Source: Podarcis tiliguerta (Eukaryota). From it: a DNA stretch of 64,000 nt. Both the position numbers and the translations under genes were made by a program. The first letter of the stretch is position 1, and every line of letters begins with the position of its first letter. The notes under the pieces were generated by a model. The model did no database searches. It was not told where the DNA came from and was given only the letters and a program-made list of their open reading frames with translations. This document shows positions 26,101 to 29,100 of this stretch, piece after piece. The stretch is taken from NCBI GenBank assembly GCA_965153285.1, contig OZ229110.1. The stretch is one strand, 5' to 3'.

Positions 26101-29100
26101 AAATAGGTACCACTCTGGTGGGAAGGTAAACGGCGTTTCCGTGTGCTGCTCTGGTTCGCCAGAAGCGGCTTAGTCATGCTGGCCACATGACCCGGAAGCT
26201 GTACGCCGGCTCTCTCAGCCAGTAAAGCGAGATGAGTGCTGCAACCCCAGAGTCGTCCGTGACTGCACCTAACGGTCAGGGGTCGCTTTACCTTTACATG
26301 CCGTGGAATATACATATTAATTGATGAAGGTTGGTGAGCCACAATTTCCTCTTGTGGAAATGAGATGTGAAGTGGCCCCAAGGATCCACAAATCTTCTGG
26401 CATTCTTTCTGATTCACACGTGTTTTTTTCTTCACGTGCTTAACTCCATTTGTGAAACGCAATCATAACACTCGTTTGCGGCATAGATTCTTCTGATGGG
26501 ATCCACTGTTCCACTCTGCTCAGCACAATGGGAGAGGATGTTTAATACATCCCGTATTCCTGGAGAGGAAACAGGTAAGCGGAATCAGCTGAAGAAAAGG
26601 AACATCAAAGAATTGAAATGCTTCCAGAATTTCTTCTTGAGTATACCATTCTAATAACAAACATTCGTATTTGCAGTGTGTGCAGCCCAAGGAGAATGGA
26701 GTGACTTGTACACTTGAAATATGTGGCAGCCGTTGATCAAATCCTGATCCACATTTCAAATACCTTGCTGGTTCACCTTGTATGATTATGTGCTGTCCCT
26801 GTTCTTTCTCTTTAAAAAAAATATAAATAAAGGTGCTCCCGGGAAATGATTTGCTACCCGGTATGGGTTCTTTGACTTTCCTTTTTTCCTTTCAGCTTAT
26901 GATTTACAATGCCATCCCAATGTGCTCTTCTCAGTATGAACGTTTGTTCAACACTTGCCGTTTACCAGGCACAGAGACAGGTACAGTGTTAGTCCTGTCA
27001 ATCCTGTCAATGTTTTTGCCTCCCCACTTTTGCATCCTAATCTTCTATGTATGTAGCAGATAACTTAAGCCTACAACATTTGCATATCTTGTGAGGCTGT
27101 GTGATTTTTCCATCAGAGAAATCACCATAATTTGCATTATAATATGCTAATAAGATCCAGTTCTTAAAAGTTATGAACCATTTCAGTGTTGTGCAAACGC
27201 ACTACTAAGTACATTGAGGCGTATTATAATGAATGATGAGAGTTGCTACAGGAATCTGTTCCCATTTGCTGTCACTTCCTAGAACTGTTTGTGTGTGTGT
27301 GTTCCTGAACAGGTGTTGAATCATTTAAATGTATTTTTTGGTTTGTATATCACATTTCTATGCCTCTTCTGTGTTGCCAAAACTAAATTCAAAGTGGTAT
27401 ACTGTACTTCATAAATCATGATAAAAATGATGATATAAAAATACTTCTTAAAAAGCAATAAAAACCTCACAAATGCACTTTTAAAAATCTGGTCCTAAAT
27501 ATATTAGCGTAATATCAAATCAAGAAACCTTCAGCTGTGACTAAAAAGCCCTCTTAAAGAGTCAAGTTTTAACCAGCCATCAAACAATGAGAGAAGTGGC
27601 TAGGTGAGCTTCTGATCAAAATACACCCCAGAGTGTAGGTACTACCACAGAGAAAGCTTTGGAGCTCTATGCTCCATTTTTGTGAAAGGTGGACTAACAC
27701 CTCTCCCCATAGATTTAAGAGGGCAGATTTTCATGAAGCCGATGAATACCTTTCACATGGCGTGTTAAAATTGGCTTGCAGGAACGGGGTGAAGGGTCAG
27801 TATTTGAAGTCACCCCAAACAGGGAATGCATTCTTAAAATATTTTTTCTAATGAACTTGTTTTCTACTGATAAAATTGTGTTGGTCAAGAACAAAATAGT
27901 TCTTGATGCTGAAAGATTGGTTCCATTTCCCCCCCAGTGCTGCACATGCTGGGTCACAATAAGCGAATAAGGATCACAAAACAAAGAAGAAAGAAGGATC
28001 AACAGATCAACAGCAGAGGATCAACAGCAGAGTAATTCTAATGGTTCTGAGAATATTTCACCATTAGAATTACTCTGCTTTTGTATTTGTTGATCGTTCT
28101 TTCTTCTTTGCTTTGCATGTGGTGAGATCTTTTAGCTGAGCCTCATTACAATGGGAAGAAAATAATGTGAGCATCTCCTCTTTGCCGCCCCGTTTATAGA
28201 CATGCATAGCAGGGCTCCCCTTTATTTTCTGGAAATATTATTTCAGATCTCGTCATCTGCACAGTTTATCTCAAATAGGGCAAAGGTAGGAGGTAGCCTG
28301 TCAAACCAGAGTAAGTAAAGTAGGTAAAGGTGTGTTAATTTTAATTTTCTAATGTTAATAAGAAACTGGATCTGCCTTATGACAAATGTAATGTCTTCTA
28401 ATGTGAAATAATTTAGTTGAGAAAAATGCAGCTTGTGCATAGAAACAGACTCAGATGGTTCATATACTTCCTTGAACTGGACCTTGCAAAAGTGCCATGA
28501 AACACTTCATAAAGCAGTTATTAATTCAACTGGTAATAAGCCCAACATTTTGCCCCGTTTTTAAATAATAGAATCACAGAAAATAAGCAATCTTTTTTCG
28601 AATATGCTCTCAGTTACCTAAAATCACTACTAATGTTCTTGGTAATATTTCTAATTTCATTACTCATTTATCTTAAAGCTTTGCTCAGCATGCTGTTCTT
28701 TTGGTAATGACAAATAGTGATCAAAATTTGACAATGAATTGCAAATTTCTGGCTTTATTTTGAATGTATTACTTCTACAAAAGCAGTGCTTTTTCTGTGT
28801 GATAGTTAGTTCTCCGGTTACTATACTGCATCCTGGTTGAAGGTTTGATATCTGCATCTCTTTTTTTTCCATAGCTTGAATTTTCTCGCATTTACATTCC
28901 TTGACTGTAAAAGAAACATAGGCTTGCATTCAGTGTACCACTAAGGAGATAGGTTTCATCCCCCTGTGGGAGGGAAATGCCATTGACGCTAGAACAGGGA
29001 GTTAGTTGAATACAGCCCATAGAATTATCTTAGAATATGTAGTTTTACCTCCTGTCATAGTTGGACATCCTATCATGCTCCGTATCAAGGTTTGTTAGAG

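Follow-up and report, generated by a model that had tools for sequence, protein, structure and literature searches.

Mitochondrial fatty-acid oxidation has its rate-limiting step, regulated by malonyl-CoA, at CPT1A, which gates the entry of fatty acids into mitochondria. In insects, a single CPT1 gene gives rise to two enzymes through the use of two versions of one exon, 6A and 6B, just as we describe below for a vertebrate CPT1A gene. In Drosophila, the 6A form is the more active one, and the choice of exon responds to starvation via SR proteins and PKA (PMC10879661). The insect exon described by Price et al. (2010, J Biol Chem 285:7857) reportedly encodes a C-terminal part of the protein, close to the determinants for malonyl-CoA and substrate, and not residues 294–322; in that case, the insect and vertebrate events would be independent.

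Ancient, tandem-duplicated and mutually exclusive exon pairs are a well-known kind of arrangement. Other vertebrate pairs of this kind consist of homologous neighbours that match in phase and nearly in length, both of which are expressed (PMC9741552, PMC8373072), and the same is true of the two CPT1A exons, 9A and 9B, considered here. The exon 3 variants of ACOX1 form a comparable vertebrate pair (Morais et al. 2007, cited in PMC3968065). CPT1 is absent from the main text of two human exon surveys (PMC9741552, PMC8373072), and no CPT1 gene appears in those supplements of a human MXE landscape survey that were examined; this is consistent with a lack in mammals of the exon type represented by 9B (hereafter B-type, that of 9A being A-type).

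The CPT1A pair belongs to this well-known kind, and it is real, expressed, conserved and annotated, although undescribed in the papers that we found. RefSeq and Ensembl contain automated gene models for CPT1A isoforms X1 and X2 with the same gene, position and exon types as the DNA analysed here. The novelty attached to the pair in the original prediction was therefore overstated, as the two databases already give the 9B form in lacertids and in dozens of other vertebrates. Searches of the open-access literature brought up no paper in which the pair is described or tested, and splicing is not mentioned in a 2023 review of CPT1A structure and function (PMC10076611). Papers on fish CPT1 count 18 coding exons and discuss paralogues and 5′ variants, but not the 9A/9B pair. 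A possible variant of this kind is the goby cDNA termed “alpha1a-2”, reportedly described by Wu et al. 2016.

The CPT1A gene and its paired exons

The window, by which we mean the whole stretch of 64,000 nucleotides of Podarcis tiliguerta DNA that was analysed, was compared by tblastn with isoform X2 of CPT1A from Podarcis muralis (P0292, XP_028591774.1). Most exon blocks are 94–100% identical, with overlapping HSPs of lower identity at two exon edges. The P. muralis protein contains both the carnitine acyltransferase domain (Pfam PF00755) and the N-terminal CPT_N domain (PF16484), and the near-identity of the window to this annotated CPT1A extends over the whole coding region. Judged by these matches, the whole CPT1A gene of a lacertid lizard lies in the window, with the P. 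muralis protein as its closest annotated counterpart. The gene and the exons around the pair are arranged as follows:

14015–45072, + strand: CPT1A coding region, with 18 coding exon positions (tblastn with P. muralis CPT1A isoform X2)
24971–25078, + strand: constitutive exon 8 (coding exon 7), ending in phase 0; at 25078, RNA contigs terminate or fork
26487–26574, + strand: exon 9A, 88 nt (29 codons plus 1 nt), A-type with a PLCSAQWER core, flanked by AG and GT
26575–26895, + strand: intron between 9A and 9B, 321 nt, covered at intron-level depth by contigs of RNA libraries X3 and X9
26896–26980, + strand: exon 9B, 85 nt (28 codons plus 1 nt), B-type with a PMCSSQYER core, flanked by AG and GT
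29987–30182, + strand: constitutive exon 10, entered in phase 1, its first two bases completing the codon; RNA contigs cover 29985–30182 and are identical to the window there

Exons 9A and 9B stand at the position of coding exon 8, or exon 9 when the non-coding first exon is counted, and specify the segment that forms residues 294–322 in full-length proteins. The prediction of two homologous exons, 321 nt apart, AG/GT-flanked and both running from phase 0 to phase 1, was reproduced in its coordinates, peptides and splice dinucleotides. By tblastn in the 64-kb window, each of the two peptides finds the other (E ~2e-9), and there is no third copy of the exon. The exons have 58% of their DNA letters and 15 of 28 residues in common, in agreement with the claim that the DNA had diverged and the motif had been kept; ten of those 15 residues are encoded by different codons, which indicates that the duplication is old. 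In their homology, near-equal length, common phase and canonical splice sites, 9A and 9B show the features of tandem-duplicated exons.

Similarity searches started from single exons or database proteins, and exons were joined solely in a local frame check, which showed that 8+9A+10 and 8+9B+10 are both open. Inclusion of both exons (8+9A+9B+10) brings a stop 14 codons into 9B, and skipping of both (8+10) brings one six codons into exon 10, such that the frame requires exactly one of the two exons, as had been proposed. The reading frame may in this way back mutual exclusion, with transcripts that carry both exons or neither meeting an early stop and probably being subject to nonsense-mediated decay.

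Repeats are found on both sides of the pair. An interspersed repeat of ~235 nt lies in the intron upstream of 9A (26037–26418 of the window) and has a second copy at 54569–54800, with 86% identity. It looks like an abundant SINE-like element; no tRNA or Rfam match was found. Over this repeat and over 30239–30400, RNA contigs reach depths of 10^4–10^5 in thousands of pieces. In the intron after 9B, positions 27977–28115 contain nested inverted repeats, with arms of 31 nt at 90% and 24 nt at 96% complementarity, and one RNA contig has a strand-switch joint there. These repeats are possibly the remnant of a small hairpin-forming transposon.

Conservation and origin of the two exon types

Searching with exon 10 by phmmer, which returned mostly genomic ORF fragments lacking exon 9, led to a CPT1A-like protein (P0019) and through it to 120 named CPT1A proteins of vertebrates. 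A script sorted these proteins by the segment that separates exon 8 from exon 10, two human proteins (P0157, P0188) being left out of all scripts, and the B-type was surveyed with two region-restricted protein searches centred on the B-type exon. At this segment the CPT1A proteins split into two sharply separate types: an A-type of 29 residues, in which GST, PLC, QWER and PGEE are fixed, and a B-type of 28 residues, in which NTI, PMC, QYER and PG(I/V)(E/D) are fixed. Most columns are invariant within each type across the groups surveyed, a sign that purifying selection has acted strongly on the two copies and also on the residues by which they differ.

For the Komodo dragon Varanus komodoensis, the painted turtle Chrysemys picta and the catshark Scyliorhinus canicula, annotation gives pairs of isoforms of one gene that are identical outside the 9A/9B segment. 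B-type isoforms, mostly named “X2”, were found in 11 squamates, six turtles and seven amphibians (caecilians, salamanders and frogs), as well as in coelacanth, bichir (Polypterus), bowfin (Amia), paddlefish, sturgeon, many teleosts and sharks. Among the squamates, isoform X2 of Podarcis muralis, P. raffonei and Zootoca vivipara has a 9B peptide identical to that of the window, and a truncated P. lilfordi model gives the same score as the B peptides of these three species. Several B-type proteins of ~773 aa are encoded by contigs of ~3 kb that were assembled from sequencing runs and look like transcripts (mRNAs). Some teleost gene models continue, by mis-prediction, through the short intron; in these, the A-type precedes the B-type within one gene, as it does in the lizard. 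Both copies are thus conserved in other species (shark, turtle and lizard, together with the teleost tandem models), and the proposal of an old duplication under purifying selection stands, both types having been kept from sharks to lizards with type-specific invariant columns. A CPT1A-like read-through model from Sinocyclocheilus rhinocerous (P0323) has two tandem B-type copies instead of A then B; the exon was duplicated once more in this polyploid cyprinid, or else the assembly or the model is at fault.

Both exons could be used to produce functionally equivalent enzymes, with the pair persisting through divided expression control only. The core C-S-x-Q-x-E-R-x-F-N-T-x-R-x-P-G is common to both types, in keeping with such equivalence. 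So are residues C304, T314 and R316, the sites within 294–322 at which the CPT1A-deficiency mutations C304W, T314I and R316G fall (PMC10076611); their presence in both copies, previously claimed, was confirmed from both translations. However, the residues specific to each type (L/M, A/S, W/Y and E/hydrophobic), along with the one-residue difference in length, have been kept for more than 400 million years, and invariants of this kind argue for constraint on each type rather than for drift between equivalent copies. We therefore regard equivalence as unlikely. By analogy with insect CPT1 6A/6B and with the CPT1A and CPT1B paralogues, the A and B proteins would differ in kinetics, regulation or stability; the original prediction had suggested differences in acyl-CoA, carnitine or malonyl-CoA kinetics. 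A comparison of the 9B peptide with PDB chains matched no CPT1 chain; the only matches were weak ones to CPT2, CrAT and ChAT (E 0.07–0.3), at the segment of the P-L-x-M-x-Q-Y motif.

Every mammalian and avian CPT1A protein retrieved is of the A-type, and the matches of the two B-exon-centred searches included none from birds, crocodilians or mammals, although a turtle-like B exon is expected to share many search words. Mammals and archosaurs thus seem to have lost the B exon, as judged by its absence from annotation rather than from genomes.

The paralogues resemble one type or the other. Over the 28–29 columns on which this likeness rests, CPT1B-like proteins (the muscle paralogue), with 28 residues and PMC, score closer to the B-type, whereas CPT1C-like proteins (the brain paralogue), with 29 residues, PLC and PGEET, score clearly closer to the A-type. 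CPT1B and CPT1C are separate genes and, unlike CPT1A, have a single exon here in the sequences compared. Invertebrate CPT1 proteins have 28 residues at this position and also score closer to the B-type. Together, the 28-residue CPT1B-like and invertebrate forms suggest that the B-type is nearer to the ancestral state and that the A-type is a vertebrate derivative common to CPT1C. The original prediction had likened 9B to the 28-residue exon of the fish CPT1A/CPT1B type, possibly the ancestral copy, and the fish isoforms, CPT1B-like proteins and invertebrate CPT1 all agree with it. The CPT1 proteins of hagfish (Myxine, Eptatretus; P0321, P0404, P0405, P0322) have a 29-residue A-type segment with the PLCSAQWER core, which makes the A-type older than the split between hagfish and jawed vertebrates.

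Use of the two exons in RNA and the choice between them

Spliced contigs of four libraries (X1, X3, X9 and X13), from four studies, were examined over the region 24700–30400. The libraries represent two closely related organisms, close relatives of the sequenced animal, with X1, X3 and X9 coming from the same one; their introns differ from the window by ~2–3.5%, and exons 8 and 10 are without any difference. Exon depth about ten times that of introns, together with contig ends at GT..AG, indicates that all four runs hold RNA. The following junctions were found, with depths from assembled contigs, which show presence but not absence or true ratios, rare forms being dropped:

25078 to 26487, exon 8 to 9A, GT..AG: depth 236 in X1 and 20 in X13; not seen in X3 and X9
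26574 to 29987, exon 9A to 10, GT..AG: depth 181 in X1 and 12.5 in X13; not seen in X3 and X9
25078 to 26896, exon 8 to 9B, GT..AG: depth 176 in X1, 173 in X3, 367 in X9 and 21.5 in X13
26980 to 29987, exon 9B to 10, GT..AG: depth 257 in X1, 213 in X3, 412 in X9 and 35 in X13

Both exons are therefore used in RNA, with all four of the predicted junctions present. Exon 9A is joined in two of the four libraries and 9B in all of them, X3 and X9 showing 9B junctions only, and 9B is therefore not a minor form. In X3 and X9 one unbroken contig crosses 9A at intron-level depth (18 and 45, respectively), so that any inclusion of 9A there is minor. Because X1, X3 and X9 are from one organism, the usage of 9A and 9B differs between samples, and not just between species. 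No joint between 9A and 9B, or between exons 8 and 10, was among those listed for the four libraries, from whose contigs rare forms are dropped, and rare double inclusion may occur in transcripts. Mutual exclusion, as originally proposed, agrees with these data, each exon being spliced to exons 8 and 10, and with the early stop that follows from using both or neither. We estimate at roughly 90% the probability that this one gene yields two CPT1A proteins, differing solely in residues 294–322 at the start of the catalytic domain.

The splice sites offer a clue to how the choice may be made. The acceptor of 9B has a strong tract, with 17 pyrimidines in the 20 positions before the AG, and its donor is GTACAG. 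Exon 9A has a weak acceptor tract (10 of 20 pyrimidines) and a near-consensus donor, GTAAGC, which is better than that of 9B. From the strengths of these tracts, 9B appears to offer the acceptor used by default and 9A to be an exon requiring activation, consistent with the 9B junctions in every library. Exon choice would then probably be set at the 3′ splice sites, between the strong tract of 9B and a weak tract at 9A that needs activation.

Alternatively, competing RNA duplexes could choose the exon, with the region downstream of 9A pairing either upstream of 9A or with the pyrimidine tract of 9B. The intron between 9A and 9B has purine-rich stretches complementary to the 9B tract, and two inverted repeats could provide the competing arms: 26595–26612 with 26868–26885 (18 nt, 89%), whose pairing is present in the minimum-energy fold, and 26426–26441 with 26583–26598 (16 nt, 81%). 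However, the arms are low-complexity sequence, purine-rich against pyrimidine-rich, of which 4.9 kb contain 27 such pairs. The folding energy of the 477-nt region gives no support to an RNA-structure switch (z = −0.47 against shuffles, 30 of 100 of which fold as well), and scans for Rfam families and tRNAs found none in the 9A/9B region. We consider a switch of this kind improbable and favour a choice set at the 3′ splice sites.

A reading of 9B as a duplicate in decay or a cryptic exon, with its inclusion being splicing noise only, fits the A-type alone in the mammal and bird proteins retrieved and the mammal-based expectation of a single exon, but is scarcely credible given its exon-level junction depth in all four libraries (with the only junctions seen in two), a peptide almost invariant from sharks to lizards, and a 3′ splice site stronger than that of 9A.

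Implications for CPT1A

Combining the two types, their distribution and their expression, a tentative history can be drawn, to which we would give somewhat less than even odds. The switch may already have existed in the CPT1A of the vertebrate ancestor, with the A-type in hagfish and both types in sharks. In fishes, amphibians, turtles and squamates it may still produce a pair of isozymes that differ in the catalytic core and in their kinetic, regulatory or thermal properties. The B-type would have been lost separately in mammals and archosaurs, the lineages that include the two endothermic groups, while the A-type would have passed to CPT1C and CPT1B would have kept the B-like ancestral form. 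Such a switch would be undescribed in the CPT1 literature.

CPT1A has been studied almost solely in mammals, where one form of the exon for residues 294–322 is known. In most other vertebrates, one CPT1A gene leads to two predicted enzymes that are 13–14 residues apart, in a segment with three human disease sites. The 9A/9B pair is thus a natural 28-residue swap for mapping the determinants of CPT1 kinetics and malonyl-CoA sensitivity, and the B-type, apparently lost in mammals and archosaurs, poses an evolutionary question that can be tested. Expression studies that treat “cpt1a” as a single transcript in fish, amphibians and reptiles may merge two enzymes.
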